Positions 2,845-41,947 of a stretch of 64,000 nt of DNA are shown piece after piece. The notes beneath the pieces are model-generated. The model saw nothing but the letters and a program-made list of their open reading frames with translations, was not told where the DNA came from and did not search any database. Source of the stretch: Ylistrum balloti (Eukaryota). The stretch spans positions 620,001 through 684,000 of the forward strand of contig NW_026782612.1 of the NCBI RefSeq assembly GCF_031769215.1, in the 5' to 3' direction. The stretch's first letter is position 1. Each line of letters begins with the position of its first letter. A program made the position numbers and the translations under genes.

Positions 2845-5267
2845 GGATGAGAAATACTAAAAATCATCTTCATTTTTACTTTGGTTTTAAGTTTTCGTCT
2901 TTGTAGAAGCCAGAGAGGTATGATTCTTGCATTGAAATGGTATTTTATAGTGTCATCACACTGAAATGTTACAATGAAGACGTAGTTCAGCACGGCGTTT
3001 CGTCGTTGACGTAATATTAACAACGGGCTCTCGGTTTCCTGTGCATTCTGCTCAGTGCTGAGTGTTAAGTACGGACAGAAAACATCCTTTTTAGTGACTT
3101 TCGTACATGCCAGACAGATCAGAGTGAGGTTATGTCCAAAGAGACGGTCTTATGAACAGATAGAGAAAATACAAAGACCCTCTAGTTTAGGCAACATTTC
3201 GTAACATGAAATAAGATCTTTCAGTACAAATAACTTATCAATGATGACGTTTATGCGTTTTTCAGCAAACGACGTTTCGAAAGAACAAATGTCATTTTGA
3301 TATAAAGTTGGGTATAATAACGTTAAATTTACACCAATTTTACAACTATTCTTGTTATAGATATCAAATTCTTTCTTAGTTTTGTTTTCAACGTAGAAGA
3401 GGTGGAATGGAACGGCATTGTATTTCCATTACAGTGAGGAAGGAATCATCGATTAGACTCCAGCTATGATACAAGCTATAGCGAAAATCAAAGTTTTGTG
3501 TTGTTATTTTTTTCTCATCACACTAATAAAATATCTTGATAACGTGATCTTTTAGAAAAAGTAGGAAAAATTGCAGAAAACATGTTGAAATTAAATGGAT
3601 GTATTTACTCCACGATCATGAGAAGAATTATGTGTGACAAAGACCCTAGACGTTCACGCAATATCATATTTATTTGACGATTCATCGCCACGCGAACAGC
3701 TAAGGCCAACTGATGGCAGAGAGTCGTTGTAATACCTGGTGTTATCCCATCGAACAACATACGGAAGACTCGCCATCTTCCTGAGAAAATTTTACCGCTA
3801 GATGTCGTTGTACACATCGATTTGTTTGTTTCTTTGTTTTTGTGATGTTCATATTTTGTCCTTTCTACATCGACTCTGAGATTGAATAAATATTTTATTG
3901 ACACGTATGCATAATACACAGACAAGATTCCGTAAGAATCAATCTAATACATGTAATATTATAACTTTGACAATAAAATTGCCACAACTATTGTTCCAAG
4001 TTGACGACCTCTCTAATAAAATGTTTCTTGAAATGCAGATTTAGTTTCGTACGAATAGTTGAAAAAATACCAGCGACCATTATAAAATTCTATGGAGAAA
4101 CATAGCGTTACACTGTAGATGTGTGTTACGTTTTAGTACAGTGTTAAGTTGTAAGATTGCAGAAACAGATCATATTATGTGTTTTGATTTAGATAGATAT
4201 TCTTAAGGAAAGGATTCGTGAAATTGATGATACAGAAACTATAACAAGAAAAGTTTCCTACAGGATACTCCATTTAGAAAGAGTCTAATTTTACCGGAAG
4301 TAAGGTTTATACAGTAACTGTACGATCTGCGTTCGCGTACGTATAAGTAGTCCACGTGACCTGGAGATGTATATTAATACGTAAAGTCAACAACTTACTT
4401 AAGAGCTGGAGTGGTTTCAGGTTTATCCGATCGGTTTACATACATGGACCTGCTTACAAAAAGTCAATGTACCTGCAAAACAGTGACACTGTCGCTAACA
4501 TATTTTTCCTTGACCTAGATTTTAACTTTTCGAAAGTAAAACAAACATAGTTAATGACCCCATGTTTTCACAAACGAACCTGTATTTTTGCTTTCGTTTT
4601 TGTAAAGGGGCCCGAGATAGGTGTATCAGAATAGTTATTGTTACTATCATTTAATCAATTTCGAGCATATGTGATAAGCAATGCTTTTAAATATTATCAT
4701 ATGTACTTGAACGATGAATTTCTTAAAGAAACGTTAATGTGAATACTGTTTATGGTAACGAATAATTTGAAAATTCTCTCTACAAACAAAAATAGATAAA
4801 TAAATAAAAAAATCAATAAATCAAAATAAAAAAATGTTGATTTGCCTGGACGTGTTAATCACCAGAAAAAAAAGATCGTATGTTTCGGTTCAATATGAAA
4901 TGTTTATGTTCAACTATTGACATATCAAACTGGCTAGTGACGCAGTTAGACTCCCCCCGTGCTTCCATCCGACGAACTGATTGATGAACGACATAAATTG
5001 AAAAATCTTGTCTCACAGTTGTAGTAAAATTAATCGAGTTTGTCAGGTAACCCCGGGAGATAATATAAAATACAAGATAAGAAAATAAAATAATATCCGG
5101 ATACGAATTGTTGACGATGATAATTAGAACGGGTATAATTGGAATACAATTGTTATTTAAAAAAAAAAAAACATAAAAAAAAAAAAAAAAAAGATATATA
5201 TTGTTCTCTGTTGTACAAAAAAAAATACTGATAGTTTCCCTTTATAGGCCTCGTGCATGAGCCGAAG

Positions 5268-5270
<3 letters not shown>

Positions 5271-5322
<52 letters not shown>
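5271..5322. repeat. (AT)n microsatellite
   Basis: Direct reading. Confidence 0.98.
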
Positions 5323-5325
<3 letters not shown>

Positions 5326-5374
5326 TTCTTCTGTGTACACGATGCATTAGGCCTTGGTGTACATGACCATCAAC

Positions 5375-5453: not shown

Positions 5454-8400
5454 GTAAGTGACATTAATAGTTTCTGGGAAAAAAACCAGATACGAAGTAT
5501 TTGAATTTCCATCATTACCATGTTGAAAATGAATCCTAATTTGTTTTCTTGTTTGTTTTCTGTGTAAGCATGTTTTCTTGATGAATCACTGTATATAAGT
5601 GAAAATAAAATCACTTTTGAAAAACATTTTTAAAAAATCGGCAATTAATCTGAATACAAAATCAAATATGGGTATTAAAATCATTCAAGCGTAAAAGTCG
5701 GTATCCACCGAAGAGTTCCACGAACTTTCCCGTCATTTGTATATTGTATCTAATTGAAAAATCAAACTGAAAATTGTTCTGAAAATCTCATCACTTAGAA
5801 ATCACCCAATCTCGTAATGCCGAGTTTTTCACAAATACAGAAGGAAAGATTTCTCAATAACGACGTTCCTGGTCTTAAAATCAACTCAACCATGACAGCA
5901 GTTTTATCCCCAGTTAGCCAACGACTTTATTCGTAGATGATCGAAAATGATTTATTGAAAATAATTGATTAATTGGAAAAAAAAAATAAATAAAAAACAA
6001 ACAAAAATTATGTTGTTCCCTATTTTTTTCTTAGTTATGTATCTATAGCCTTACAATATGTGAAATATATTTAAATCTTCTGATTCAAAACTTTTGCCGA
6101 TGTAATGACGGATACAAGTAGTCAGAATTATGTTAGGAAGCAAATATTCTTTATTTATTTGTTGATATTTAACTTCTTGGGTTTAAGAATACCGGCAAAA
6201 TGAACGAAAATGGAACACCTAAGACATATGATGATCTTGCGGTTTAATTACCAGTTCCAGATGATTTTTTATCATGAATATCTTATCATACATTAATAGG
6301 GGATAGTCTTTGTTTCTTGGTGAATATTTACATTTAATCAAACAGGATGAGAAATTTGATACGATAAATATTTCCAAATCAATCGACATACAATAAGTGA
6401 ATACACATCAAGAGCACGGCAAGGCGAGAGTTTGTTACTAATTCAAAAGTCTAACTCTACCAGAGTTGTCGTTCCTGAATTTCGCAATGGATTCTGGGAG
6501 ATTTGTTATCAGTGATCTGATTGGTCAAAATGAATTGAAAAATCAGAACTTCATATTTTCTCTCAGTAAACAGACCACAAGGTTTACACAATAAAACTTC
6601 ATTAAAACTAAGAAAAATAAAATAGGTTCTTAGTAAATTAATTTTGACGTTTCATTGTTTCGTGTTTACAAGGAAGTACATATTCTTTGTAAATTATATT
6701 TTCATTTTCTTTTCAAATACTTTTTCTTTGTAGATCTGAAGTGTTAAAATGTATTTCTGATATAAAGGTGATGACTACCATTTAAGACTTATTTCACCTC
6801 TATCGTACTTTTTACTTTTTTAATTTACAAATGTTAAAGTTTTACAATGCACTACAAAAACGATTGAAAAATCAGGCGGTAACATCTTAGTAAAGACGAC
6901 TGCTTATAGACAAACGAATACATATATTCTATGCATATTAAATGATAGATACGACGCATGCCAAACGATGAATTATAAACTGCATCGTACATCTAGACAT
7001 TTGGCACGGTGCTACTTCGAGCCTCATGTATGCAGACTAAACTATGACGTCAGAAAAGCAAACGAAATATATCAATAATAAATAATTTATCGTATATTTT
7101 ACATAGTGTTGTAATAACTTGTACCCACCAATTCTGTTGCTGATAATTATGGCAATAAATATATGTTTAAATCGAATTAATCAGCATTTCGGCCCTTAAC
7201 ATCACTAGAAGGACGAAACAGCTGTTTGATATAGTTTTATTAGTTAGCCGACTCTTTTGGATCTAGTTCTAAATCAGTATTGAAAAATGTTACTCATATG
7301 TGTATCTACTGTACAATCCCAGTTAAACTCGAGATAATTTACAGTTTATGTCACCATGTTACATATATCGGGTTATTTCGACACCTTCTCAAATCATGTC
7401 TACATCTTTAGCTTTAAATACGTTCATCATTAGTGTAAGTGGTCGGGTGGCGCAGTGGTAACGCGCTCGTCTTTCACCTAACCGCTCCGTGTTCGATTTC
7501 CGGAACGGACGTGAAAAAGTATGGGGTTACCTGCCCGACCACCTGGGTTTCCCCCGGGAATTCTGGTTTCCTCCTATAGTAAGACCCCTCCCATCTGGGC
7601 GAACAAGAGTGATTAATACAAAAATAAATAAAGTGTATATTATATATAAATCATAACTGAATGATAGAAAAACGTTATCCTAATGAAGCCGTTTAGATCT
7701 GATAATCTTTCTACACATTCGACGAAATGAGCCTGGCGTCGTTCCAAATATCTCTGTGTCACGTGATACAAAGTTTTAATTAAAGTGCAAACATGTACTT
7801 GCCGCCTTATTAATTCATTTATACAAAAATAACATAGTTCTACATTCTGTGCATATATTTTAATACACATTTAAATTCACATGCATAATCATTCATTTGC
7901 CGACATGATAGCCAATCAAAAGTAACATAACAAACAGCGACGTCATGCTATATCATAAGAACTAACCAATAACAGCGCTTGTTTCAGGTAAGATTTAATA
8001 ATATATCATAATTTTCGTGCGAAATGTCGGCAACTGACAGACAAATTAGAATGGTACAGATTGATGAAGATTATGGAGACGTTTACTGTCATCATTATGA
8101 TCTCATCGAACAATATTCTATTGAAGCTGGACTTGGATTGACCAAGATTTTCATGGCGGGTTTCGTCGATGAAAAAGAAGACACTTACCCTTCCGGAACA
8201 CCAGGGCCCGTGTTCATGAAACCGTTCTCATGTTCAAGCATGGATTTCGTGCTCAAGCCTTATGTCTTGTTTAAGTTAAAAATTAATAAATAAGAATGAT
8301 TTTGCCGAAGATTTAAATACAATTTTGAAAGGACTTCAAGTCAAATCTATATTCAAGGTTTAAATTTCACATTTGTATTATTTTATATTATTTAGGTGAA

Positions 8401-11400
8401 TTATAAAAAAAATTGCTTGAGCACAAAATCTATGCTTGGGCATGATAATTTCATGGCGGGTTTCGTCGATGAAACAGAAGACACTTATCCTTCTGGAACA
8501 CCTGGTCTTATTGTCCCCGTAAAGTTATTATTGAGTTCTGATTTCTTTGAGATTTCGGTATTTTCTCTGTTGTTATTGATATGATAAACCCTGGAAAATA
8601 GATCTAGTCTGAGTTATGTCCAATCTAGACTTTGGAAGTCCATTTCATAGCCTGGGCTGTACATGTGTAGACATTCAATACTTCAAGTACAGCGACAGGA
8701 GGTCAATTAGTTGAAATAGTAGCAGTAACAAGTAAGAAAGTTTAAATATTAACTAGATCATTAACCTAAGAATTAATTCAAATGACCTTTTTTTTCATTT
8801 GCAGGTTTCGTCAGATCGCACAATTGCCCTGGAAGCCCGCAATACGTGAAGTCCAGTAAACGTTACACAGAGATTGACATTGTTACACGTGCTAGGTATC
8901 ACATTCAGTCCAGTTAATGATTATCTCCTGTGTTTAAAATTCAAGGCCATTAGTATCACTGACGAATCCTACAAGGACAAAATAGCTGTATGATGTAGTA
9001 TCACTGACGAATCCTACAAGGACGAAACAGCTGTATGATGTAGTATCACTGACGACTCCTACAAGGACAAAATAGCTGTATGGTGTAGTATCACTGACGA
9101 GTCCTAGAAGGACAAAACAGCTGTATGATGTAGCATCACTGACGAGTGCTAGACGGACGAAACAGCTGTATGATGTAGTATCACTGACGAATCCTAGAAG
9201 GACGAAATAGCTGTTGGATATAGTATAACTGACGAGTCCTAAGAGGACGAAACAGCTGTATAATATAGTATCACTGACGAGTCCTAGAAGGACGAAACAG
9301 CTGTATGATGTAGTATCACTGACGAGTCCTAGAAGGACGAAACAGGTGTATGATGTAGCATCACTGATCAGTCCTAGAAGGACGAAACAGCTGTATGATG
9401 TAGCAACACTAATTCTTTACTGTGAATAGTGATAATTACTTAGTAGGTATTCTTCTACAGACTTCACAGCATGCTGTTTACTTCTAGGTCTAATCCGAGT
9501 AACTGTACTTGGATCATAGAACGAGATGACTGTAACGGTGTTGGGGTAGAGGTTGACGTCCAGGGATTGGCCCGTCGTAACGACTATTCCCTACACATCA
9601 ACATCTACGATGGTAGGAAATGCTTACTATATAGTCCGGTGTGTATAAATCCTGGGTAACTTTTCTGGTAGGATATGCTGGTGTGTATAAACCCTGGGTA
9701 ACTTTTCTGGTAGGACATGATTACTATATAGTCTGGTGTGTATAAACCCTGGGTAACTTTTCTGGTAAGACATGATAACTATATAGTCTCGTGTGTATAA
9801 ACCATAGGTAACTTTTCTGATAGGATTACTACATGCTGGTGTGTATAAACCCTGGGTAACTTTTCTGGTAGGACATATATATAGTCTCGTGTGTATAAAC
9901 CCTAGGTAACTTTTCTGATAGGACATGCTGGTGTGTATACACCCTAGGTAACATTCCTGGTAAGACATGATTACTATATAGTCTGGTGTGTATAAACCCT
10001 AGGTAACTTTTCTGATAGGACATGCTGGTGTGTATAAACACTGGGTAACTTTTCTGGTAGGACATGCTGGTGTGTATAAACCCTAGGTAACTTTTCTGGT
10101 AGGACATGATTACTATATAGTCTGGTGTGTATAAACCCAGGGTAACTTTTCTGGTAGGACATGGTTACTATATGGTCTGGTGTGTATAAACCCTAGGTAA
10201 CTTTTCTGATAGGACATGCTGGTGTGTATAAACACTGGGTAACTTTTCTGGTAGGATATGCTGGTGTGTATAAACAATGGGTAACTTTTCTGGTAGGACA
10301 TGATTACTATATAGTCTGGTGTGTATAAACCCAGGGTAACATTTCTGGTAGGACATACTGATGTGTATAAACCCAGGGTAACTTTTCTGGTAGGATATGC
10401 TGGTGTATATAAACCCTAGGTAACTTTTCTGGTCGGACATGATTACTATATAGTCTGGTGTGTATAAACCCTGGGTAACTTTTCTGGTAGGAAATGATTA
10501 CTATATAGTCCTGTGTGTATAAACCCTGGGTAACTTTTCTGGTAAGACATGATAACTATATAGTCTCGTGTGTATAAACCCTAGGTAACTTTTCTGATAG
10601 GACATGCTGGTGTGTATACACCCTAGGTAACTTTTCTGATAGGACATGCTGGTGTGTATACACCCTAGGTAACATTCCTGGTAAGACATGATTACTATAT
10701 AGTCTGGTGTGTATAAACCCTGGGTAACTTTTCTGGTAGGAAATGATTACTATATAGTCCGGTGTGTATAAACCCTGGGTAACTTTTCTGGTAAGACATG
10801 ATAACTATATAGTCTCGTGTGTATAAACCATAGGTAACTTTTCTGATAGGACATGCTGGTGTGTATAAACCCTGGGTAACTTTTCTGGTAAGACATGATA
10901 ACTATATAGTCTCGTGTGTATAAACCCTAGGTAACTTTTCTGATAGGACATGCTGGTGTGTATACACCCTAGGTAACATTCCTGGTAAGACATGATTACT
11001 ATATAGTCTGGTGTGTATAAACCCTAGGTAACTTTTCTGATAGGACATGCTGGTGTGTATAAACACTGGGTAACTTTTCTGGTAGGACATGCTGGTGTGT
11101 ATAAACCCTAGGTAACTTTTCTGGTAGGACATGATTACTATATAGTCTGGTGTGTATAAACCCAGGGTAACTTTTCTGGTAGGACATGGTTACTATATGG
11201 TCTGGTGTGTATAAACCCTAGGTAACTTTTCTGATAGGACATGCTGGTGTGTATAAACACTGGGTAACTTTTCTGGTAGGATATGCTGGTGTGTATAAAC
11301 ACTGGGTAACTTTTCTGGTAGGACATGATAACTATATAGTCTGGTGTGTATAAACCCTAGGTAACTTTTCTGATAGGACATGCTGGTGTGTATAAACCCT

Positions 11401-14400
11401 GGGTAACTTTTCTGGTAGGACATGCTGGTGTGTATAAACCCTAGGTAACATTCCTGGTAAGACATGATAACTATATAGTCTCGTGTGTATAAACCCTAGG
11501 TAACTTTTCTGATAGGACATGCTGGTGTGTATACACCCTAGGTAACATTCCTGGTAAGACATGATTACTATATAGTCTGGTGTGTATAAACCCTGGGTAA
11601 CTTTTCTGGTAGGAAATGATTACTATATAGTCCGGTGTGTATAAACCCTGGGTAACTTTTCTGGTAGGACATGCTGGTGTGTATAAACCCTGGGTAACTT
11701 TTCTGGTAGGACATGATTACTATATAGTCTGGTGTGTATAAACCCTGGGTAACTTTTCTGGTAGGATATGCTGGTGTGTATAAACACTGGGTAACTTTTC
11801 TGGTAGGGCATGCTGGTGTGTATAAACCCTAGGTAACTTTTCTGGTAGGATATGCTGGTGTGCATAAACACTGGGTAACTTTTCTGGTAGGGCATGCTGG
11901 TGTGTATAAACACTGGGTAACTTTTCTGGTAGGATATGCTGGTGTGTATAAACCCTAGTTAACTTTTCTGGTAAGACATGATTACTATATAGTCTGCTGA
12001 TAAATTCTATCCATGACCGAAAAAATCAAGGTAACAATTCCAAAACCTCTGATCTTATAATGATAATTAAAAGTGATTATAAATAATGGATATATCTGAT
12101 ATTAGAGGTACGTAGGCTTCATACATGTGCTGATTGTCACATTTTCTTTGACGTTGCAGGATTGTCTTCAATGTACCCAACCATTGCAACGTATGTCAAA
12201 CACCGATATAGCAATAGTGAGAGAAGCTTTGGGCCAAGACGGTCGTCTGGAAGATTTTTAACCATAGTGTTTACAGTCCGGGGTGATCACTACAGTCAGC
12301 GTAATTTTCAGTTCCGTTATCGTAATACACCCAAAGGCGAGTTGTTTAGTAATCTTCAATATCCCTTATAATTATGATGTTGACTGAACTGTTATGTTTT
12401 TGATAATGATGTTCTGAATGATGACCATAAGGAAAAGAGTATTATGTTGCTTAATGACAATATTATAGTTTATCGAGAATATTTCCCCGCGGGCATGTAG
12501 GTATATTTGTTGTGGGATGTATGTTTAAAGATGTCCATTGTCGTGAATTAGTTATCTAATCAGTGATTAACGTACCATCGTGTAGATGGCAGCACGTGAT
12601 ATCTAAATATAGACATATACCTAGCTACTCAAGCCATAAATAACTGAACACCAATCCATCAAAATCCAAAAGGAAATAAGATGATAGACCCAATAAAGAG
12701 TAAGAAATTTAAGTGTAAAGTTTCTACACTATCTTGTTCATCAAACCAAATTACATCAATTTTGGTGTAAACACTTCTATTCTATGTATGCTGACCATCC
12801 CGACTAAAATTATTTTCAAACCTGAAGTTCATTGAATATCATGGTTAGTTCACCCCCAAGCCTCAATTTTCACATGCATTTTGAACAATTTAATTTTTCT
12901 ACATTCGCCTTCAGGGTGTAAGCATATTGACCCCTGCCTAGTTCCAGAGTGACGAAACATCTTTACAATGCAGTTTAATAATTTCATTTATGCTTAATTC
13001 TCAATTTGTATCGAGAAGTAATGTTCTGTTATGTGACTTTTGTTACTTCAGAGAATAACTTGTTACTGTTGTAGGTCTGTTGCCTTCGGACACAGAAAAT
13101 GGAAAGATTGAGAATTCCGTTTCTGATACGTGTGGAGATGAATTCCTAATTGCATACCAAACACCGAACGTTGTCACATCTCCAGGATACCCTCGAGAAT
13201 ACGGCAAGTAAGAGAAGATGATACCATTTAAAAATGGTTATGCCCCTTGATCGAATGATTGGGGGCATATTGTGTTGTGATGTCTGTTTGTTTGTTTTTC
13301 ATCTGTCAACTTTACCCTCGCATATAACTATTGTACCGTAATAGGTTGGGCTTTCATATTTGGCATGTGTGTTCCTTGTGAAAAGACCTTTCTGGCGGTA
13401 CGATTTTTTTTATCATGTGACCGTGACCATGATTTTTGATCTACATTTGAAAAACTTAAACACTGGCCTTAACTTTGTATTGTAAGAGGTACGCTTTAAT
13501 ATTTGACAGAGTTACGCCCCTTGAACTTAGCAATTTCCAATAATCATCACCGCAATGACATTATTGGTTCAAAAAGTGTGCTTCCAATTTTCACATGCCT
13601 TACACAGTACAGTTTTAATGCCCCACTTCAGATTTTCGTTGCAAACGGGGACATAATGTTTCATATACACATCTTGTTGATATGAAAATAAAGACGTGTA
13701 AGATATTTGATCACCATTAAATGAAAATCAGATATATTATTTGGCGTGTAATAAGATAATTAAAACCTTGTCTATGAATAACAATTAACATTAACAAATT
13801 TCTTTTTTCTAAAGATCACTGAAAAAAACTCTCGGACTTCAAAAATGTATTTATGTCGTAATAAAGCTGTTTTATGTATGTATTCAAATGAAATAAATAC
13901 GGCGATATTGCACATTTCTTCAGAATGTGAGGAAATGTGAAAACGGATTTCCGAACAGAACCAACACTTTCGGAAACTATTCGTTAATTTCCGTCGAGGA
14001 AATGTGAAATCGGATTTCCGAATAGAACCGACATTAATCGGAAAGTATTCGTTAATTTCCGTCAGACTTTTTGACACTTTGAATGTCAGCATTACCTCGA
14101 TATTATTAGATATATGAATGTATCACTAACTGTGAAAGATGCCTGAAATTGCTTTATTTCAGCTCACTGGACTGTAAGTGGACGATAAAATCTGATGACA
14201 TCTGCAATGATGACGTCATACATGTCACAATCCATTCTTTTTCACTAGAGGAAACGTACGACCACCTTGTCATCTACAACGGTATGTGACGTCATCAAGC
14301 CTGTTGATAGGCCTATTTGATTCGCTTTACAACAAATAAACAGATACTTAAAATGATAGGTATTAATCAAAATACTATCATTCTCATGTGTACTTTATGT

Positions 14401-17400
14401 ACGTATATCGTCAACAAATAGAAAGCAATCAAGTTTCATATATAGAACTCTAGAGGCTAATTAAAAAACCAGAAGCGAATTTTAATTAGCTTCTTGATCA
14501 CGTGTGACTCTCAATCGGTGATACCGAGTTTGTGATCATCTGATCATGTTTCACTCAATCGGTGATACCGAGTTTGTGATCATCTGATCAAGTTTCACTC
14601 AATCGGTGATACCGAGTTTGTGATCATCTGATCAAGTTACTCAATCGGTGATACCGAGTTTGTGATCTTCTGATCAAGTTTCACTCAATCGGTGATACCG
14701 AGTTTGTGATCATCTGATCATGTTTCACTCAATCGGTGATACCGAGTTTGTGATCTTCTGATCATGTTTCACTCAATCGGTGATACCGAGTTTGTGATCA
14801 TCTGATCATGTTTCACTCAATCGGTGATACCGAGTTTGTGATCATCTGATCAAGTTTCACTCAATCGGTGATACCGAGTTTGTTATCATCTGATCAAGTT
14901 TCACTCAATCGGTGATACCGAGTTTGTGATCATCTGATCATGTTTCACTCAATCGGTGATACCGAGTTTGTGATCATCTGATCATGTTTCACTCAATCGG
15001 TGATACCGAGTTTGTGATCTTCTGATCAAGTTTCACTCAATCGGTGATACCCAGTTTGTGATCATCTGATCAAGTTTCACTCAATCGGTGATACCGAGTT
15101 TGTGATCTTCTGATCAAGTTTCACTCAATCGGTGATACCGAGTTTGTTATCATCTGATCATGTTTCACTCAATCGGTGATACCGAGTTTGTGATCTTCTG
15201 ATCAAGTTTCACTCAACCGGTGATACCGAGTTTGTGATCATCTGATCAAGTTTCACTCAATCGGTGATACCGAGTTTGTGATCTTCTGATCAAGTTTCAC
15301 TCAACCGGTGATACCGAGTTTGTGATCTTCTGATCAAGTTTCACTCAACCGGTGATAATGAGTTTGTGATCTTCTGATCAAGTTTCACTCAACCGGTGAT
15401 ACCGAGTTTGTGATCTTCTGATCAAGTTTCACTCAACCGGTGATAATGAGTTTGTGATCTTCTGATAAAGTTTCACTCAATCGGTGATACCGAGTTTGTG
15501 ATCATCTGATCAAGTTTCACTCAACCGGTGATACCGAGTTTGTGATCATCTGATCAAGTTTCACTCAATCGGTGATACCGAGTTTGTGATCATCTGATCA
15601 AGTTTCACTCAATCGGTGATACCGAGTTTGTGATCATCTGATCAAGTTTCACTCAATCGGTGATACCGAGTTTGTGATCATCTGATCATGTTTCACTCAA
15701 TCGGTGATAATGAGTTTGTGATCATCTGATCAAGTTTCACTCAATCGGTGATACCGAGTTTGTGATCATCTGATCATGTTTCACTCAATCGGTGATAATG
15801 AGTTTGTGATCTTCTGATCAAGTTTCACTCAATCGGTGATACCGAGTTTGTGATCATCTGATCAAGTTTCACTCAATCGGTGATACCGAGTTTGTGATCA
15901 TCTGATCAAGTTTCACTCAATCGGTGATACCGAGTTTGTTATCATCTGATCAAGTTTCACTCAATCGGTGATACCGAGTTTGTTATCATCTGATAAAGTT
16001 TCACTCAATCGGTGATACCGAGTTTGTGATCTTCTGATCAAGTTTCACTCAATCGGTGATACCGAGTTTGTGATCATCTGATCAAGTTTCACTCAATCGG
16101 TGATACCGAGTTTGTGATCTTCTGATCATGTTTCACTCAATCGGTGATACCGAGTTTGTGATCATCTGATCAAGTTTCACTCAATCGGTGATACCGAGTT
16201 TGTAATCTTTTGATCAGGTGTTTTTTTAATAAAAAATGCCAAGTTTTTAACCCTGTCACGTGTGTCACTCAATAAGTGATTCTGATTTTGTAATTTTTTG
16301 ATCACGTGTCACTCAGGTAGTGATTTCGAGTTTGTATTCTTTTGAGCAATTGTCATGCAACAGGTGATAGCGAGAATGAAATATATTGTTCATGTGTGTT
16401 TCTCAATAGGTGATACCGCGTTTGACCCCGTGTTGATCAAGTTATCCGGAAATGTGGAGCCTCAGTTGATCACGTCTTCTGGAACCTCAATTGTTATCGA
16501 GTTTAAGACTGACGACACAGCATCAGGACGAGGCTTTCATTTGTCATACACCCGAATGAGGCGTATTATGAGACTTTCTATACAATAACTCACTACATGA
16601 TGTTTTATAGAGGGTACGAGATGGTACAGAATCGACAGAATTTTTCTTCTGAACTATAATTCTTTATACACATAATTAGTGTGACGAGATGGTAAGATAA
16701 TACCATCGCTTTTTGGTACTGGACAGTTGCCTTTACATATGTATAAAGCATGATTCTGTACCATCTCGGACACTCTATACAACAGAGCTAACACACTTCA
16801 CGCTGGTCATTTGTCTAATGAAGGTGACAGTATCGTCATCGAAACGCCACACTTAAATATTTTACTTATGTGTAATAAGACTAAATAAAGCTATATATTA
16901 TTTTTATATCTATCCTTGATTGACGTCGTTTGTTTAATTTGATAAACTTGGATAATTCTAATATATTTACATTTCAGCGACTCCTACACTGTCAGAGTCG
17001 GTAGCTATCAAAATGACCGAACGCTCGGCGGACTTGTCAGTGGATTTCACATCGAGTACACCACACCGTAAGGTGTATTGGAGTAGAAATGACGTCATCA
17101 TTCACCAAGACGAAAAACACATATTCACCGTCACCCCAGCTAAGGTTAGAATGGAGCCGGAGACTGACGTCACCGTGGAGGGATTCACAGCCAAGCTCAT
17201 AATAACGAACCCAGATTCACAAGATATTGGCATGTACAAAATAGCAGTCGTGAACGAGTTTGGTGTTGGAGAACGTACTGTCAATCTTAGAAGAAATTCA
17301 GGTAATCTAATTACATGTTGAAGATAAATAAATTTATCCTGTACCTGGCACCACCGTTGTCGGGATACACCTGCCACATATATGTTTGCTGTATTCGGCA

Positions 17401-20400
17401 GTGAAGGAAAACAGCTGTATTTTAGCACGTGCGGTAATTCGACAGAATTACTCTCTGAATTAACTTGAATATTACGTTTAGAAAAATGAATAGTTGTTGC
17501 AGTAAGCAATTTGACATGTTGTAATGAACATATTGATCTATGAAAATTCATAAAATCGCTGTTCTATCAGATAAAGTTTAGAACTATATTTCCGTGCGGA
17601 AGAATTATTTTGGCATCCATCGGGCAAAATTCAGCGTAACGTCGACGTCAGCTAAACGAAGATTGAACAGCTTGATTTTCAGTCAATGTTGCAGGATAAA
17701 TAGAATATATGGTCAGTGTCTTAAAATACAATCTGTATTATGGCTCGGTACTGAAAGACAAAAGATGCTCCCAAGAGGCTCGCCACTTTGCTCTTTCGTC
17801 ACCCTCGCCAAAATACAGCTTATAGTTTAAGACACTGACCATGTATCTCTATGTATCTGCTTGTTTTAGATAATAAACTAGATTAATTTCAATATTTCCA
17901 TTTGATAATTTCTTTATCTTCCATCAACTTTTTATGAGAAGCAATTCCACCATATGAAGTAATAAATGTTAATGTTGCAGTTCCTGTTGTACAGAATTAT
18001 GCCGTGTTTCCAGAAAATGCTTCGATTACAGTCACTTTTGCTGCATACCCAAACTTCAAGGTAATATACATTTACAACATAGTCTCTATTTATAGCATAT
18101 TTATACTGTCATTTTTTGTTTTAATGGATACTGCTTTGAATACTAAGATTTCGGAATATAACCATCGAGATAATAATGCCCTATAACATGACAGATCGTT
18201 TTTAACCAAACTGAATAATGACGTCTCTCTTGCAGAGTAAAACAATCAGTTCTGGTTAATTAACTTGTGATTTAATTATATTTTCATTGTCATGTATAGT
18301 CAGCAGACATCACATTTTCACAGAAATTGTTACGAATCAATGTAGAGCAGACATTACTTTAAAGATGACGAAAATTGTTTTTTATCATATTTGCTGAAAA
18401 ATCGATCACGTGATAAAGGAATCTTTAGTTCGTTTTCATTTGATAAGTGATTTATGAAACATGTCAGGATTTTTTTTCGTTTCTGTAGGCCTCTTTGTCG
18501 AGCTGAAAGGAAAAAGAAGTTCTTAGGCTTGTTTCAAAAAATTCACTTATCAAACGGAACCTCTCGCAGGATCATATACTTACATGACGTAATGGACATT
18601 TTAAATCTAGTTTTGTAGGTTGGATAATTCCTGCATGTACTTTTCCTTTTCAGAAAATAATTAAATCCTTAATACCGATGATGTAAGCCAACCTTAGGGG
18701 TTAAAATCTGAAATGTTGGAGAAATAAATATTTATCATCTTAAAAGATGAGATAAAAATAATACTTAGTATTACAATGTAACTGGAATTTACAAATTATT
18801 CTTGAAAAAGTATAGAATCAACGAATTATGTAAAATGTCTTTATAAATTAGAAATTGAACAAATGATCTTTTAAGTGTATTTGCAATGTTCTATCATACA
18901 CTTTGTAAACTATTTCTATATACTAGATACAAAAATTTAAACAGATTGATCCTTTGAAACAAAGTTCGACGTGTCAGACCTTTTTCTCTTGATGGTTATT
19001 AAAATAAAACCATTGGATATTTGTGTCATTTTGTTAGGCTGAATGGTACAAGACACAACGCATCCTCGCTTCCGGAAGTGACGTACATATAACAACGGAG
19101 TTTGTTGAAAATTATGAAAACGGAAATGACGACATGGCCATTTATAAATCCGTTCTGAGTCCAGCATTCCCAACAGAGAATGACTACGGGGAATACAGGT
19201 TTATAATCAGGAACGATTTGGGGACGTCCGAAATTTACATACACATGGATTTCCCCGCATCAGGTAGAAAGTAAAGAAATTATCTAATATACAATTAAGA
19301 AAAAATCTGGTAATCTATCCTGTTGCACGACATTCAAGGTACTTAAATTATTGGCATTTTTTGCCAATTTATGATCTATCCTGGTTCCACATCTTTCGTC
19401 TTCTTGTACCTTCATTCGTCCGTCTGAAGTGTTATCATTTTTGCATCACTATATGTGAACATCGTTTAGCAAAAATGATTTCATATAAAAACAATTAACT
19501 CAGGTCTTTCTGATTGTCAGAATACCGAATGTTCATAAGTCCGCCATGTTTATTTTTCTATCAGTCTCAAAATTGAGAAAAACAAAAAATAGAGATAATC
19601 GGAAATCTGCATTAAAAAAAAACGTTAAAAGGACCTGTAAATAGAATCATAATTCAAACATTTTGCCGGAAATGATTTGAAGATCAATGGAGTATTTCTG
19701 AACAAAATGACAAACTTTAACCGTCGCAATCCTGACTGACCACCTGTTGACCATAACGTTGGAATGCAGTTCGTGATTCGTAAAAAATGAACATGAAAAT
19801 ATTTCCCCTATATCTTGTAATAGACGGTGTGAGAATTTATCAAAGAATAGAGTCCGTTATACACGTCAACTTATAAACATGAACTTTGGTATGTATCTAT
19901 ATTTAATTAATTGATTCACAACACAAAAAGTGGAGTGTATTCTTTTCATTAACAGAGTTCATTTCCCTTGTTGTGTATTGGCTCAATAACATAAAATTGA
20001 TATTAGAAAGTTTATCCTTAAATGAAAATGATGTTTTTGGCTTAACAGAATCAACAAATTAGTTTACATACATTAGAAACGCATCTTTCCTTTTATATTC
20101 GTGTGTAAGGCAGCGTTTTACACAAGCAATTGTCGCATGGCCTTAGTCATCCAATGTCTTTATTTCAGAACTTCCAAAAATATTGGCGACTCCTTCACCC
20201 GTGAAGCTAAGTAACAGAAATCTGACTCTTTCGGTGAATTTTGACTCAAATATCGCGTATCCAACGATAAAATGGTATCATGGAGGCAATCGCTTGGAGA
20301 AATCATCCAAATACCGTCCCTATGCGAAATGGCAAGGGATTTCCGCCCAGGATTGGTCCACAAACGGATATCCGGTTGCTGTAACTTTAACAGAGTTCAA

Positions 20401-23400
20401 ACGCATTTCAACAACACATCAAGGTCACACTAACAATAGTAGCAATAGTAATGGCTATGACTGCCCTACCATCGGCGGTGATAGATCGTCAACACAACCT
20501 GCTTCTAGCTATGTTGCTATGCTTACTATATCTGACGTAACTCCCGAGGACTTTGGCGTCTACCGTGTAGTTGTAGAGAATGGCGCTGGGATATCGCGCC
20601 ACGTTATTGACGTCATCGCGCCGGAAGGTATTGTGGGTTTTTTTTATAACGCATGCGTAATCAAGTTTCTATGATTTCAAAATATCGTAGACTATCATCT
20701 ACACTTCCAAAATCGCTTGCTTGAATATAAATGTGTTTAAGCAATAATTGATAAATAGTCAGAATGTTTGGATCTATCTTGTTAATACATGTAGCTTTGT
20801 ATCAGTAAGATATATTTTTGCTGTATTCCGGCATTGACAGCGGAAAAGACAGCCCCATACATAGTTAAGTATACACATTGACTTCATTTAATGGAATCAG
20901 TTTCGGTTAAGATTAAACAAAGGACACACAAATAGCACACTTTAATACAAATTTAGAGTTAGATACAGTAGAGTTGGATTAAACTGCATCATACATCTGA
21001 TTTTTCCTTCGTCAATCGTCAGTCGTGGTGCTAACGGCCTCGAAACGAAAGCCAATCGAAAGAAATGTTAAACGTATAAGGGGAGTTGTACTAGCCCCAT
21101 AATTCAGTAGATATCATTTCTTTTCTCAACGACAAACAATTTCCATATATTGAAAAGTTGAAGATCATTTCTTTTTATTTTTAACATAAGTATACACTCT
21201 GCTCTAGTATTTCCTCATGTCACGTGCAACCAGGCGGACACAATAAGACTTACATGTAACGTCACTGCCTGTTCTTCAAGTAACCAATCCTGGATTCATT
21301 CCTACGATGGTGAGACCGTTAGGTACCTTCCCGGGCATCAAGATGGATCAATCAACACTCTGACAATCCCTCTGTGCATGCATTCGGACGCAGGCACTTA
21401 CACGTGTGTTGCTACGGAAAAAGAAACCGGAAATGACGTGGCTATTCAGCATGATAAAACTACACTCACAGTTAGAGGTACGGGAAATAACGAAAATGGT
21501 TGCATTGTCTCTGATATATTATATGCAAGAAGTGAACACAGCTTGATCCTACAGTGAAAACAATTGATGTCGCCACTTTATTTATAAAAAAAAGTTAATT
21601 ATATAGTATATATCTACATACACGCATAGGCTTAAATGTATGACATTTATAAAAGTTTCGTTCAATGACGATTTGTCTATTGTATTTCATTCGATAAACG
21701 ACTACTGATAGTAACTCTGATAACCAAATGCCCATCTGAATTGACGTAATGCACTGTTTAATGTGTCGACAAAATGACCCCAGCAATTTTGTATTGTGGT
21801 TAAATCGCCGTCCTTGTGTTGACAAAGATGTCCTTTCATTAAAAATTAAAAGTAAAGAAAGCCTTTATAATTTACTTTACTAATTCCTAATAATTAATTC
21901 AATCATTGAAAAACATACGAAATAATACGATGGTAGTCTTTTATTTTCAGCTGTCCCTGTGATTCTCGAATCCACTGTAGACATCATGAGAAACACCTTA
22001 CACATTGAAGTACCATTCTTTTCTTATCCTCCTCATCACCGAATCACTTGGTACAGAAATAGAGACCAGATCAGTTCATCTTCTAAAATCACCATGGTAA
22101 CAAAATCACGTGACGTGGTTCTACCGATGCATGGAAAGACATGTAGACAGGCGGGTCACGTGACCTCTATCACATTGTCCTCACTAGATGGAAGAGACTT
22201 TGGGATATATAAGATTACAGTCTCAAATGAAATGGGAATTTCCGAGCATATCATCGAAGTTCAAAATCCTGAGTATGGTATGTACATTCATTTTGTTATA
22301 AATGAAACATAATTCAAACTCACAAGGTGTAACGTGCCAATTTATGCTTCATCGAAGAAACCCACCATGTTAATATGAGTCAATCCATGCCAAAACAACG
22401 ACACTCTGATACATACTTACAGCAACGTCCAATTTATGCTTCATCCTATTACTATAATGATATTGAAATCATGACGCTTATTGCACAGCTAAGTGACGAG
22501 CTGTTCTTGAAGGTGTAGGAAAAGATAGTGATAAGTGGTTGATGAAAGGAATCGGTTATATCGTTAATTTTAAATTCTGAAAGGTACACCAAATAGGCAA
22601 AGTGAACAAATCAGGTCATCGTTATAGAACAAAGTACATTATGGAATTCTGTAAATTTTGATATAGTGTCATAGATATGATAGCAGACCACAATGACCAA
22701 AGTTAGACGAGAAAACAATTAAGATTGGTCATCGAGAGTTAATTTTGAAAATATGTCTTGGTCTTAAATTAAAAGAAAAACATTACCGATAAAGACGGCG
22801 AACAACAGCAGTTACGGAAATTTAATCTTAATTTGGTGACGTTCTTTGATAATGAAAATATACGCGCCTCTAAAATACATGCAAATCTCTACGGCCATAC
22901 GTAGGTTTAGAAGTGTTACCAGTATGAAACCTATCATTTTCAGAATTAAAAATGTTCTGTGTTTAAAGTCCGCCAAACTCTTGTGACCATCGCTATTTTT
23001 CAGATAATCAAATGTGTCCCTTTACTTAACGATCTGTTTAGAAATAGCTATAGATATGGCACATGCGGATATTTCACCACCTCTAACAGCTGTGTGAAGG
23101 ACAGTCATACTTCTCTATACATGCCATTCAAGTGAGTTTAGAAAATCGGCCTTTACAGACAGGTGACTGAGACAAGTTTGAGTGTAGTTTCATTTTGGAT
23201 ATGGCTCTACTGTATCTAATATTACACTTGTACTGAATAATCTACTTACCTTTGTGCATTTGAACAAATCTGTGTGATTTATTTAAAAAACGTGACGGAA
23301 TGTTAAATATTTCAGCCAATCCTGTATCTTCAAATCACGTCAGCGTTTCACATGATGGCGGATCTGCAATACTCCGTGTAGTCTTCTTCTCCTACTACAA

Positions 23401-24506
23401 CAAATTCAGTGTGGATTGGTCCTTTAATGGAAAGGAGGTGCGGGAAAATCATCCTGTCAATAAATACGAAATTGAGACTGGTTCCTCCACTTTTTCCTAC
23501 AGTGATGATACAGTTGTGAGAATCATGCGTGAGCAATCTACCACCCTCACTGTCACGTGTGTTTCAGATGAGGATTACGGGAGGTATGACGTCGTTGTGT
23601 CAAATAAGGCGGGAAAAGCAGTAATCCCAGTGTGGTTAGCGAAACCTGACCAAGGTATTTATAGATAAATATCATAAACAATAAAGATGGTAATTTATGG
23701 ATCGATTTTATGATAAATATAGATATTTTGTCATACTGGTCTTATCATTGTCTTTCTTTCTTTTTTTCTTTTCTTTCTTTCTTTCCTCGCATTGTTCAAA
23801 AGAAGAAGAAAAAGGAAAGAAAAAAACTGATCCAAACACAAAATAAACCGGTGCTTCGGAAATATCGACCCATTGTTTGACGCCGGATAGTTCTGACATT
23901 ACAATTGTCAACCAGATTAAATTTCATACTGTTAACTAGTAAGAATCGCCTACCATCTCAAATTGTGTTTAATTATTAAATAGGTTAAAAAAACTGAAAC
24001 ATACTAAAAAAAATTGATGGAAAATTATCTCACTCAAACCTCTAGATATGTGCTGAACTTCAAATACTATTTTAAAGAGGGTTTCTACTTGAAATATCTA
24101 ATGAGTTGAGCGGCAAAACCTCGATACCGTTCTTGCAATTTGTGCAAAGTGAAAGTGAAACTTGATCTTCTACTACCAACAGGTGTTCCTGAGATCGTAG
24201 GGGATATTGTTACAGACGTCAAAAATTCAACAGGGGAGATAAATGCGACATTCTTATCCTCGCCAAGTTATACATTCATCAGATGGTTAAAAGAGGGTAA
24301 GGAAATAGAAAATGATTCTTCTAAATATAGGATCTTAAACGAGAACATCGATATTGATGTCCCCTCCGATGGGGAAACAATGGCGAAAATAGGAACCATA
24401 ACGAGGCTGAGTGTGACGTCACTCGAGGACAAAGACTATGGGCGCTACACAGTTCAAATCTTCAACAAAGTTGGAATGACTGACAGATCTGTGAAACTGG
24501 ACGAAG
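5375..24506 (+). CDS. Secreted or cell-surface protein: signal peptide, 2 CUB-type domains, 7 Ig-like domains (15 exons, about 1,075 aa so far; terminal exon uncertain)
   Basis: Exons 5375-5453, 8805-8895, 9488-9612, 12160-12336, 13075-13207, 14163-14281, 16410-16562, 16978-17301, 17981-18060, 19038-19263, 20169-20627, 21208-21477, 21951-22277, 23316-23654 and 24183-24506 join into one open frame of 3,226 nt with all phases consistent. N-terminus MSPRNGIISNRFYFTLVGLILITPSEG is signal-peptide-like. CUB motifs: CG...TSPGYPREYGNSLDCKWTI...SFSLEETYDHLVIYNG...SSGTSIVIEFKTD...GRGFHLSY. Ig motifs: W at strand C and D-x-G-x-Y-x-x-x-V-x-N-x-x-G at strand F. Confidence 0.85.
7201..7230 (+). ncRNA. Solitary internally deleted hammerhead relic of the same family
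   Basis: atcact-agaaggacgaaacagctgtttgat matches the array unit but lacks gacgagtcct. The upstream flank ggcccttaacatcact resembles the array's ggccattagtatcact. Confidence 0.6.
7441..7633 (+). mobile_element. tRNA-derived SINE (V/Meta-domain-like)
   Basis: Pol III A box TGGCGCAGTGG, B box GTTCGATT, central GGGTTTCCCCCGGGAATTCTGGTTTCCTCC motif and AATAAA-rich tail. Related copies lie at ~25955 and ~41332. Confidence 0.75.
8203..8448. mobile_element. Second copy of the same MITE, right TIR truncated
   Basis: Colinear similarity to 26329-26597 along the whole length. Confidence 0.7.
8805..12336 (+). CDS. CUB-Ig gene, divergent first CUB-like domain (exons 8805-8895, 9488-9612, 12160-12336)
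   Basis: ...SNPSNCTWIIERDDC...LHINIYDG...SSGRFLTIVFTVRGDHYSQRNFQFRY follows the CUB pattern (NCxWxI; IYDG; SSGxxLxIxF; F-x-F-x-Y). Confidence 0.7.
8951..9410 (+). ncRNA. Tandem array of ten 45-nt minimal type I hammerhead ribozyme units, intronic and sense to the CUB-Ig gene
   Basis: Unit tagtATCA-CTGACGA-GTCCT-aga-AGGAC-GAAA-C-AGCT-GTA-TGATg has the hammerhead core (CUGANGA, GAAA, NUH), stem I atca/tgat, stem II gtcct/aggac, and a 2-bp stem III with a palindromic AGCT loop. The unit at 9266-9310 is fully canonical. Confidence 0.85.
9613..11995. repeat. Composite 42/55-bp minisatellite with a ~1,025-bp higher-order duplication
   Basis: ctggtgtgtataaaccctgggtaacttttctggtaggacatg, with or without attactatatagt. 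Identical artefact ORFs start at 9974/10999 and near-identical ones at 10113/11138. Confidence 0.95.
13075..16562 (+). CDS. CUB-Ig gene, second canonical CUB domain (exons 13075-13207, 14163-14281, 16410-16562)
   Basis: TCGDEFLIAYQTPNVVTSPGYPREYGN|SLDCKWTIKSDDICNDDVIHVTIHSFSLEETYDHLVIYN|GDTAFDPVLIKLSGNVEPQLITSSGTSIVIEFKTDDTASGRGFHLSY. Confidence 0.85.
13238..13678. mobile_element. Non-autonomous Helentron/HINE-like interspersed repeat of the molluscan type
   Basis: ttatgcccc...gggggcatattg start, (gtct/gttt)n tract, tgaccgtgacc motif and ggggacata...tacacatcttgtt end. Recognised from memory of mollusc repeat families, not searched. Confidence 0.5.
13928..14064. repeat. ~68-bp tandem duplication
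   Basis: gaggaaatgtgaaa.cggatttccgaa...ttcgttaatttccgtc occurs twice. Confidence 0.8.
14500..16220. repeat. 44-bp minisatellite (~39 copies)
   Basis: tcactcaatcggtgataccgagtttgtgatcatctgatcaagtt. Confidence 0.95.
16978..24506 (+). CDS. CUB-Ig gene, seven Ig-like domains (mostly one domain per phase-1 exon; Ig2 is split over 17981-18060 and 19038-19263)
   Basis: F-strand motifs: DIGMYKIAVVNEFG, DYGEYRFIIRNDLG, DFGVYRVVVENGAG, DAGTYTCVA, DFGIYKITVSNEMG, DYGRYDVVVSNKAG, DYGRYTVQIFNKVG. Confidence 0.85.
17709..17842. mobile_element. Small foldback/MITE-like element
   Basis: Perfect 17-bp inverted repeat atggtcagtgtcttaaa (17709-17725) and tttaagacactgaccat (17826-17842), extending imperfectly inward. 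Confidence 0.55.
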
Positions 24507-25954
24507 GTGAATATCAATGAATGTTTTTCAATGGAGGCATAACAGAAGGAAATGAATACCTATAGCTCTTTCTATATAGACAAGTATATCACATTTCGTT
24601 CCGGATAACGCCTCCATAGTTTTCTAGTTGCCCTTATGTATTGTATGTTTGAGTACAAATAGGTGAAATTTCAGTATATTCTCACTTTCCTTCTTTTGTT
24701 AAATATTATAAAGATGATTTTTTTTTAATTATCAGGTAAAATATCAAATGGTTTAGTTTAGTTTTAACATGTTTGAAAAAAAATCGGCATCAAACATGAA
24801 CGACTGTTTAATATGATTTATTTTTTATTTACAGTATGCACGCTATAACCTTTAAAGTAATGTGGTGTTGGCATCATGAGGAACTAATGAGAAAATTCTA
24901 CCGCAAAGACTCTGATAACAATGAAACTCCCGAGGCGGATTTTCAGCTGTTCCTGAAATACAACGATAAACACCACAGCTACAATATGTAGTGTTGACTG
25001 TCTGTATCTATACTGTTACGTATAACCTCATTTATTCTGTTATTTTATTTGTCACTTGAGCAGTGCATTCTGTGCTTTATACTGTTCTGCGTGTACAGTT
25101 ATTGTTGTGAAACATTTTTGCGGAGGAAGTGGAGGTAAGGTCCAGATAATGGACGCCGTGGTCGACTCCATCACCGAAGCAGTTCCTACGTTACTGATAC
25201 CGTTAACAAAGCACAACATTAGCAACAATATGATACTGTATAGTTGTTAAAGTTCAGGGGCTGATATTTGCCCAGTTATTCCAGATATATATTTTGATCT
25301 ATGTTAATTGTTTGGTGGGTAGTTAATCTCGCGTAATGTAAGATGGCCGCGAATAAAGCGAAATTCATATCCCTTAAATATTACCCATTATAAAGTATAT
25401 TGCTAATCTGAGGTTGTAAAACAACACTTTTGTTAAAGATGAATTGTTTACCTTTGTCTCCTTTACTGATCATGCAGTCAGAAATCATTTCAGACTGATT
25501 TGGCAGTGTGCCATAACCATGACGGTTTTTATTCTTTATCAAGTCTTTATCAGGTCTTTATCAGGTCTTTATCAAGTCCAGCAATCTGTCTAATGATAAC
25601 AAAACGGTGATAGTTCGGTGGCAATTGTCGCTTCCTGTCAAGTAAAATTGGAGATATTATTTTTTTTTTCTAAATCACTTCAAGAAAATTTCAAATATTT
25701 ATTCCTTTTCCAAAACCAAATGTACATTAAATGTAAACTTTCTTAAATCATTACCTAGAGTAACAATATGTTTAATACTGACTTAGAATCTATAGTGTGT
25801 AATATTGAATGAGACCTTTACTGAGTGAGTTTTTTTATTAATTCATTGTTTTTGCTTGAAATATTATCAATAATGAATAACAATTAAGCAATAAAAAGGT
25901 TTTCTGTGTTCAGAAAACCATAAAAGCAAACAATATCATATTCGTTTTGTTTTG

Positions 25955-34210: not shown

Positions 34211-34314
34211 TATGTGTTTGTTCTATATTTAGAGACATGTCACCCAATGACTGCACATCATCTCATAACTATAATTCTATACACATGTACTACACCTGTA
34301 TGTACCTGTAAATG

Positions 34315-38335: not shown

Positions 38336-41947
<3,612 letters not shown>

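Follow-up and report, generated by a model that had tools for sequence, protein, structure and literature searches.

Does an intronic array of back-to-back hammerhead ribozymes, whose repeat unit is hardly longer than the ribozyme itself, represent a minimal replicating RNA or a source of small RNAs, as an earlier note on this DNA had suggested, or was the ribozyme multiplied as DNA within something larger? We analysed the 64-kb stretch that contains the array (the window); all features described below lie on the forward strand. TRF placed the array at 8951-9410, with 10.2 head-to-tail copies, a period of 45, 90% matches and 0% indels, and the ten units previously read from the letters were thereby confirmed. 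A type I hammerhead takes up 44 of the 45 nt of each unit and one base lies outside it, so that the monomer is, as had been claimed, essentially only ribozyme. The Rfam covariance-model search that the note had proposed gave a Hammerhead_1 (RF00163) match of 35.6 bits at 9223-9266 (unit 7), above the gathering threshold of 34 bits. This was the only one of the ten units to pass the curated threshold; weaker matches were obtained at 9268-9311 (unit 8, 30.7 bits), 9313-9356 (unit 9, 26.0 bits) and 9358-9401 (unit 10, 25.7 bits).

Eight matches to a pattern of core and stem II were found, all inside the array and none elsewhere in the 64 kb, and 100 shuffles of the sequence returned 0.00 matches. 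Standard pairs filled 93.8% of the predicted pair cells across units. The array thus shows the invariant core of the type I hammerhead (C3 U4 G5 A6 G8 A9, G12 A13 A14 and A15.1-U16.1), its H17 site and three helices, and reaches the gathering score through unit 7. It is at the same time a minisatellite, defined as a DNA-level tandem repeat with units of ~10-100 bp: the units run head to tail at one locus between unique flanks, and share variants. Contigs from independent DNA runs, from two labelled organisms, connect the unique flanks to the first unit (8408-9002) and to the last (9381-9640), with three differences each; the array is therefore not an assembly artefact.

The condition of the single units varied widely. 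Unit 8 (9266-9310) is identical to the array consensus, and its letters bear out the layout described earlier: a stem I of 5-6 bp with a U-G pair, the core CUGACGA, stem II (GUCCU-AGA-AGGAC), and then GAAA, a 2-bp stem III, an AGCU loop and GUA with A17 at 9305, the core being intact. Unit 7 (9221-9265; A17 at 9260) also keeps its core, together with the single stem I mismatch reported before, an A-A. The core is intact in unit 9 (9311-9355), where the palindrome is broken (AGGU loop), and in unit 5 (9131-9175), where stem II is weakened both by the mismatch already noted (G-G) and by a loop change that had been missed. Within units 1-4 (8951-9130), G12A occurs in units 1, 3 and 4, and G10.1 is replaced by A or C in units 1, 2 and 3; judging by these lesions the four units are catalytically dead or impaired. 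Unit 6 (9176-9220) combines G10.1A and C15.2U with a GUU triplet and an altered 3' arm of stem I, and unit 10 (9356-9400) reads CUGAUCA (C7U and G8C), a dead core. A partial eleventh unit (TAGCAACACT) and a possible decayed 3' tail of the family (TAATTC..TACTGT) occupy 9401-9440. The core lesions earlier ascribed to the remaining units are present as G12A and G8C, but it had been overlooked that units 1, 2, 3 and 6 have A or C in place of G10.1. All 11 invariant core bases are complete in units 2, 5, 6, 7, 8 and 9; only four of the ten units (5, 7, 8 and 9) have both this core and the G10.1:C11.1 pair, and six have lesions at essential positions.

Folding calculations were performed for single units and for unit junctions. 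A lone unit is predicted to misfold, the type I hammerhead having -2.4 kcal/mol against -9.4 kcal/mol for the MFE structure. At the junction of two consensus units the MFE structure (-15.9 kcal/mol) is a type III-like hammerhead, in which the neighbouring ACAGCUGU palindromes pair across the junction. Such a fold spans 9298-9348, with the palindromes of units 8 and 9 as stem III, the hairpin UGAUG-UAG-UAUCA as stem I, the core of unit 9 and a predicted cut after 9305. It gave the top Hammerhead_3 (RF00008) score; the best junction matches were 40.8, 39.2, 34.5 and 32.8 bits, and none reached the 48.5-bit threshold for type III membership. Since the junction fold is the MFE and scores 40.8 bits, the pairing in cis proposed earlier is plausible, and in the model it is the thermodynamically favoured route to a ribozyme. 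Neighbouring units in array RNA are thus predicted to be able to form type III-like or double hammerheads. No compensatory pairs were observed in the helices among array units, as expected of copies that are 90% identical.

The intron containing the array (8896-9487, 592 nt, GT..AG) separates two coding exons, one encoding the first part of a CUB-like domain (8805-8895) and the other a CUB-like segment with a C-x-W-I-I motif (9488-9612); a third exon (12160-12340), identified by homologue alignment, completes the domain. Splice sites, a frame that stays open across the join and continuous alignment of the join with homologues P0003 and P0004 uphold the intronic location claimed before and place the array on the sense strand. 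Searches of Pfam and PDB with the 71-aa two-exon peptide alone gave no match; the gene model was confirmed by homologue alignment, and the host is a bivalve gene with CUB and immunoglobulin (Ig) domains. A homologous gene (L004) has an intron of ~593 nt at the same position, in which neither a hammerhead nor an array was found, indicating that the array is a later insertion into an old intron. Conservation of the intronic site between species, as for amniote HH9/HH10, is likewise not seen, the homologue intron having no hammerhead. We also considered that the intron had been gained with the element (an "introner"), as both intron ends read CTAG followed by GT and the intron start, GTATCAC, resembles the unit. 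This likeness does not go beyond chance (score 13; random median 16), and the idea was rejected, since the homologue has the intron at the same codon position without a hammerhead.

The 45-nt unit belongs to a family that is present in the DNA runs at roughly 10^4-10^5 copies, an estimate obtained from summed contig depths, which are not a copy number. Word depth was 11-20 in the unique flanks and 0.85-1.19 million in the array bins. In each run, 70-166 contigs exit the unit into one common 5' leader and one common 3' tail, between which family units usually sit. A remnant of this leader abuts the first unit at 8925-8950 (local alignment to the loose-end consensus; score 28, reached by 0.05% of random windows); the tail match after the array (to 9440) was not significant. 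Because the array lies where the hammerhead of a dispersed leader-hammerhead-tail element normally sits, it is not a satellite standing free of any context, and the description "no cargo" holds for the 45-nt repeat unit and fails for the carrier element. As a family member the locus is unremarkable and in part dead. With regard to a tRNA-derived (SINE-type) origin of the carrier, ARAGORN, which covers the tRNA type, found no tRNA-like sequence in the window. Scans of prokaryote genomes and viral contigs for the unit found nothing, and the metagenome scan returned only a retrozyme-like repeat in three lake contigs (L001-L003), a 565-nt tandem unit with the same core, stem II and palindrome. These perfect-core hammerheads of retrozyme type also fall below the Rfam threshold, and a sub-threshold score therefore says little.

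We then compared substitutions in the core with those at other sites. Core sites were changed in 4 of 110 cases and other sites in 25 of 340 (p=0.26), or in 8 of 130 and 21 of 320 (p=1.0) if positions 10.1 and 11.1 are counted in the core. Core positions mutate as often as others, which argues that there has been no selection for catalysis. All four invariant-core lesions lie in two CpG dinucleotides, C7-G8 and C11.1-G12. Four changes recur in three units apiece, namely G12A, C15.2U, a G-to-C change in loop 2 (UACAA) and G10.1A, and even in the bin where the G12A variant prevails the depth was 0.41-0.62 million; on the evidence of these sequences, dead variants were copied too. Similarity between units was not significantly related to their distance (Spearman 0.09, permutation p=0.27). 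It may be added that recurrent mutation at a CpG could mimic a common G12A without the copying of dead units. Tandem arrays with units of 17-205 bp make up 31.6% of the window, and none of the some twenty other arrays matches any Rfam ribozyme family.

Among known systems, the metazoan non-LTR retrozymes (Cervera & de la Peña, 2020, PMC7229834) share with the array head-to-tail genomic repeats, each with a canonical type I hammerhead, a helix II of 4-5 bp, a helix III of 1-2 bp with a palindromic loop, low GC (42-44% here), very high copy number and occurrence in molluscs. Their monomers, in contrast, measure ~170-400 nt (350-390 bp in Mytilus), close to the ~150-400 nt stated earlier, and have a self-paired non-ribozyme body, whereas the array unit is the ribozyme alone and, at 45 nt, lies far below the described range. 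Retrozymes are themselves the element and are expressed as monomer-length circRNA; the array is embedded in an element with leader and tail. The minimal hammerheads of Penelope-like elements (Cervera & de la Peña, 2014, PMC4209133) resemble it in their weak helix III and predicted activity only when paired and, like the family, are dispersed and numerous in invertebrate genomes. They differ in a helix II of 7-8 bp and in lacking helix III nucleotides, the helices of the array being of the canonical retrozyme type, and they sit in pseudo-LTRs ~3 kb apart that flank an RT/GIY-YIG ORF. Among ORFs of at least 130 aa in the 64 kb, a cut-off above the size of short degraded fragments, no Penelope RT and GIY-YIG ORF was found, the ORFs being host-gene exons, a PH-domain ORF and frames through tandem repeats.

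Newt satellite 2, Schistosoma Sm-alpha and Dolichopoda pDo500 are, as cited in PMC7229834, also tandem DNA repeats whose transcripts contain hammerheads, but with monomers of ~330-500 bp consisting of one ribozyme and a long spacer, which the array lacks. Activity of the newt and avocado-viroid ribozymes requires a double hammerhead, formed through an extended helix III (Forster et al., 1988, as cited in PMC4209133). Ordinary minisatellites inside bivalve mobile elements likewise repeat some tens of bp about ten times, with common variants and unique flanks; what sets the array apart is that its unit makes up an entire self-cleaving ribozyme motif, the two ends of which pair as stem I. Known animal hammerhead tandem repeats thus have monomers of 170-500 nt, and no description of arrays repeating a bare 45-nt ribozyme was found in the literature searched.

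Taken together, we think it probable that the array is a hammerhead-only minisatellite, which arose when the hammerhead of a dispersed element, retrozyme-like or Penelope-associated, was expanded at the DNA level, and is no working mini-replicon. An abundant non-coding element, consisting of the leader, one canonical metazoan type I hammerhead and the tail, would have inserted into the old CUB/Ig intron. Slippage or unequal exchange at the DNA level would then have multiplied the element's 45-bp hammerhead segment on the spot, just as it would have filled about one-third of the window with other minisatellites, and a TAG(Y) direct repeat flanking the single hammerhead presumably set the unit at exactly 45 bp. 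The array would be transcribed within the host pre-mRNA, where the palindromes of neighbouring units may pair into type III-like or double hammerheads, while the rest would have lost catalysis and be in decay, to which the two CpGs that coincide with core bases G8 and G12 would contribute. Most likely the array has no host function. An exact match of unit and ribozyme, on the other hand, is also what an RNA-level process of self-cleavage, circularisation and rolling-circle reverse transcription would be expected to produce.

The match of unit and ribozyme, the MFE junction fold, the abundance of the family and the published spread of retrozymes as tandem hammerhead repeats through circRNAs (PMC7229834) would all suit an active minimal retrozyme, whose transcripts cleave themselves into 45-nt RNAs and circles that a Penelope-like RT copies by rolling circle, thereby spreading arrays. 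We regard this as improbable, because the array sits in its normal slot between leader and tail rather than at a fresh target site, dead variants appear to have been amplified, minimal hammerheads that lack loop-loop contacts show poor cleavage, dimers included (PMC4209133), and the literature searched records no 45-nt circRNA; the working retrozyme or small-RNA source originally envisaged is not supported, as six of the ten units are lesioned and the core is unprotected from mutation. Quite improbable, too, is the specific scheme in which the 45-nt unit is the smallest retrozyme-like replicon, cleaved at junctions into circles that resist cleavage because helix III of the monomer is too weak, with rolling-circle reverse transcription rebuilding the arrays. 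If true, this would be the genomic counterpart of the "protoviroid" idea, a ribozyme that is the whole genome.

An entirely inert fossil, a real hammerhead sequence that is cleaved in no arrangement and persists as junk, would account for the weak monomer fold, the single unit above the Rfam threshold, the short stem I without evident loop-loop contacts and the low in vitro activity of minimal variants (PMC4209133). It nevertheless seems unlikely, given that in units 7-9 the cores are perfect, the GUA sites undamaged and the junction fold stable, and that low scores say little in view of the lake contigs. That the host has exapted the ribozyme, with self-cleavage tuning how the CUB/Ig gene is spliced or expressed, or with release of a functional small RNA, could be argued from its sense orientation in an intron of an expressed-looking gene and from the conserved intronic hammerheads of amniotes (as cited in PMC7229834 and PMC3088659). 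This is very improbable: the homologue intron at the same position has no array, the units are largely damaged with an unconstrained core, this is one copy in a family of 10^4-10^5, and in vertebrates introns are depleted of retrozymes (bioRxiv 10.64898/2026.07.22.740005).

If the hammerhead-only minisatellite family truly comprises 10^4-10^5 units, it would amount to a natural collection of thousands of hammerhead junctions, double or type III, that lack spacers, and would allow a direct test of whether hammerhead-repeat amplification needs ribozyme activity, which in the 45-nt family it appears not to. It would also offer a case in which two essential core bases lie in CpGs prone to methylation, an arrangement that would rapidly inactivate ribozymes. 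The main value of the locus itself lies in its datable history, that of a late insertion into an old intron.

Tandem Repeats Finder reported at 8951-9410 a repeat with a period of 45 nt (10.2 copies, 90% matches, 0 indels). In the hammerhead register, with unit starts at 8953 + 45i, each unit is made up of the stem I 5' arm GUAUCA, the core segment CUGACGA, stem II (GUCC(U), loop, (A)GGAC), GAAA, stem III with its loop (C, loop AGCU, G), the cleavage triplet end UA (A17), the stem I 3' arm UGAUGU and a single linker A. Since every segment but the linker belongs to the ribozyme, a type I hammerhead accounts for 44 of the 45 nt, in agreement with the earlier note, which had described a monomer consisting of the ribozyme alone. 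With curated thresholds, the covariance search proposed in that note gave a sole Rfam match in the 64 kb, Hammerhead_1 at 9223-9266 (35.6 bits, threshold 34). Permissive thresholds gave Hammerhead_1 in three further units (30.7, 26.0 and 25.7 bits, all below 34) and Hammerhead_3 across several unit junctions (39.2, 34.5 and 32.8 bits, threshold 48.5); junction 8/9 scanned alone scored 40.8 bits for Hammerhead_3, also below 48.5. A core-plus-stem II pattern matched eight times in the array and not at all in the rest of the window (0.00 expected), and contigs of independent DNA runs join unique flank to the first and last units. The ten-unit hammerhead array is genuine.

The array lies within a GT..AG intron of 592 nt (8896-9487, + strand), as had been proposed. 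The exons at 8805-8895, 9488-9612 and 12160-12340 (all +) each contribute part of one CUB-like domain, whose open frame aligns without a break over both splice joins to the N-terminal ends of the database proteins P0003 and P0004, two homologues. Downstream, 14110-24517 on the same strand contains a further CUB domain (25.3 bits in Pfam) and no fewer than five immunoglobulin (I-set) exons. It is this continuous alignment, and the further domains on the same strand, that place the array in an intron in the sense orientation. At L004, the genomic locus of P0004 (assembly GCA_041381155.1), an intron of about 593 nt occupies the identical position, and no hammerhead or tandem array was found within it. 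The intron is old and the hammerhead element arrived later; the shared position predates the insertion if L004 is an orthologue, and equally if it is a paralogue. Creation of the intron by the element is ruled out by the same comparison. L004 is minisatellite-rich at 9938-13800 and 25050-25365, with 118 copies of a 33-nt unit within the gene, 12 of a 41-nt unit and 7 of a 45-nt unit that is not a hammerhead. Further along the window are ATP-grasp-like exons (31063-31935, +) and an ORF clearly encoding a PH domain (38339-39010, -; 69 bits).

Family abundance and flanks were read from contigs of the DNA runs, where 31-mer contigs merge single copies with array ends. Word depth was 11-20 in the unique flanks, 0.85-1.19 million in the bin of unit 8, which is the array consensus, and 0.41-0.62 million in the bin where the G12A variant predominates (9080-9138), among the deepest in these runs. 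Summed contig depth, itself not a copy number, points to roughly 10^4-10^5 copies of the unit. In each run, 70-166 contigs exit the unit into a shared 5' leader (..CCTCCTAGGCTTCAAAATTTAGGCCCT-TAGC-ATCAC..), and a similar number exit into a shared 3' tail (..TGATG-YAG-TTTAATTCATTG..), with a TAG(Y) repeat on both sides of a single hammerhead, 45 nt apart. This one leader and one tail indicate that the hammerhead normally lies inside a dispersed leader-hammerhead-tail element, whose hammerhead slot the array fills. The 5' flank in the window (8925-8950) matches the leader with a score of 28, which 0.05% of random windows attain; the match of the 3' flank to the family tail was not significant. 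Two-unit pieces and diverged flanks were present in a marine plankton metagenome. Just upstream of the host exon, 8136-8548 is a second dispersed repeat (summed contig depth 5,000-16,000, against 11-20 for unique flanks) with direct repeats of 57 nt at 8149 and 8449, spaced by 300 nt, and inverted arms of 34 nt at 8225-8258 and 8415-8448. A Pfam search with its open frame gave no match, and a few contigs run straight from it into hammerhead units at other genomic sites.

The invariant core and G10.1:C11.1 are intact in units 5, 7, 8 and 9; stem II is weakened in unit 5, stem I has a single mismatch in unit 7 and the palindrome is broken in unit 9. G12A is found in units 1, 3 and 4, unit 10 has the core CUGAUCA (C7U, G8C), and G10.1 is replaced by A or C in units 1, 2, 3 and 6. 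The core has no protection from mutation: substitutions fall on 4 of 110 invariant core sites and 25 of 340 sites elsewhere (Fisher p = 0.26), or, with 10.1/11.1 counted as core, on 8 of 130 and 21 of 320 (p = 1.0). No compensatory changes were found in the helices among the array units, and helix conservation is simple descent. The unit has two CpGs only, C7-G8 and C11.1-G12 (unit offsets 10-11 and 25-26; 8953-9401), both on essential core bases. Each of the four invariant-core lesions falls at one of them, G12A in its three occurrences being a CpG-to-CpA transition; these lesions may reflect methylation-driven decay.

The earlier note had also suggested that neighbouring palindromes pair in cis, and predicted folds favour this. 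As an isolated monomer, unit 8 reaches only -2.4 kcal/mol in the type I hammerhead fold, against a minimum of -9.4 kcal/mol for a misfold pairing core CUG with palindrome CAG. At a junction, a 5-bp hairpin (UGAUG-UAG-UAUCA) is predicted between the 3' arm of one unit (n) and the 5' arm of the next (n+1), and an 8-bp helix III between the two ACAGCUGU palindromes, with the GUA of unit n opposite the core of unit n+1. In-cis pairing would be the favoured route to a ribozyme because the monomer hammerhead is weak and this type III-like fold is the minimum for a consensus/consensus junction (-15.9 kcal/mol). It follows the classical logic of the double hammerhead (Forster et al., 1988, as relayed in PMC4209133). 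An intact core with acceptable stem I and helix III is predicted only for cleavage after 9260, with the core from unit 8, and after 9305, with the core from unit 9, the remaining junctions relying on G12A, G8C or G10.1-lesioned cores or on poor stems. Around units 7-9, the intronic RNA could plausibly undergo some slow self-cleavage.

The locus is one ordinary, partly decayed family member. The array probably arose at the DNA level, by in-place expansion of the hammerhead segment within a retrozyme-like or Penelope-associated element, because the array is located between the leader and tail of that element, because dead variants are common to several units and abundant genome-wide, because the core is unprotected, and because about twenty other, non-ribozyme minisatellites (units of 17-205 bp) bring tandem arrays to 31.6% of the window. 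The TAG(Y) bracket at 45-nt spacing would let slipped-strand duplication yield the exact unit. Among the other arrays are three of 44 nt (14510-16216, 33018-34212 and 39539-41151) and a 42/55-nt compound array that fills the next intron of the host gene (9638-11996). No other minisatellite of the window matched an Rfam ribozyme family, and at E <= 1 the non-hammerhead arrays matched no family at all, save simple repeats near 5250-5340 and 23750-23830 with weak sub-threshold miRNA matches.

A wholly inert fossil would differ from such an expansion solely in whether any unit still cleaves; with two junctions predicted to be competent, we regard it as unlikely. The minimal retrozyme-like unit of the earlier note, as a working retrozyme producing 45-nt circles, would draw on the same junction folds, and is somewhat less likely still. 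Exaptation of an intronic ribozyme by the host would suit the sense orientation, and is very improbable given a core open to mutation.

The unit has the helix set of the 'canonical' metazoan type I hammerhead, in which helix I has about 6 bp, helix II has 4 bp and helix III has 1-2 bp with a palindromic loop (PMC4209133). For metazoan retrozymes, the literature gives monomers of about 170-400 nt (PMC7229834); the array unit is 45 nt. Introns are depleted of vertebrate retrozymes (bioRxiv 10.64898/2026.07.22.740005). Hammerheads of PLEs are located in pseudo-LTRs flanking the RT/endonuclease ORF (PMC4209133, PMC6765202, PMC8557442). Our literature search found no published description of arrays with a bare ribozyme as the repeat unit. 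Three lake metagenome contigs (L001-L003) carry a 565-nt tandem unit that shares core, stem II and ACAGCUGU palindrome with the window unit and differs from it in stem I (GCAAUG/CAUUGC); their type I hammerhead has a perfect core yet falls below the Rfam gathering score. On L003 (1-1839) the unit is repeated head-to-tail in 3.25 copies at 98-100% identity, and the repeat may be a retrozyme, or else a circular replicon that assembly has turned into a concatemer.
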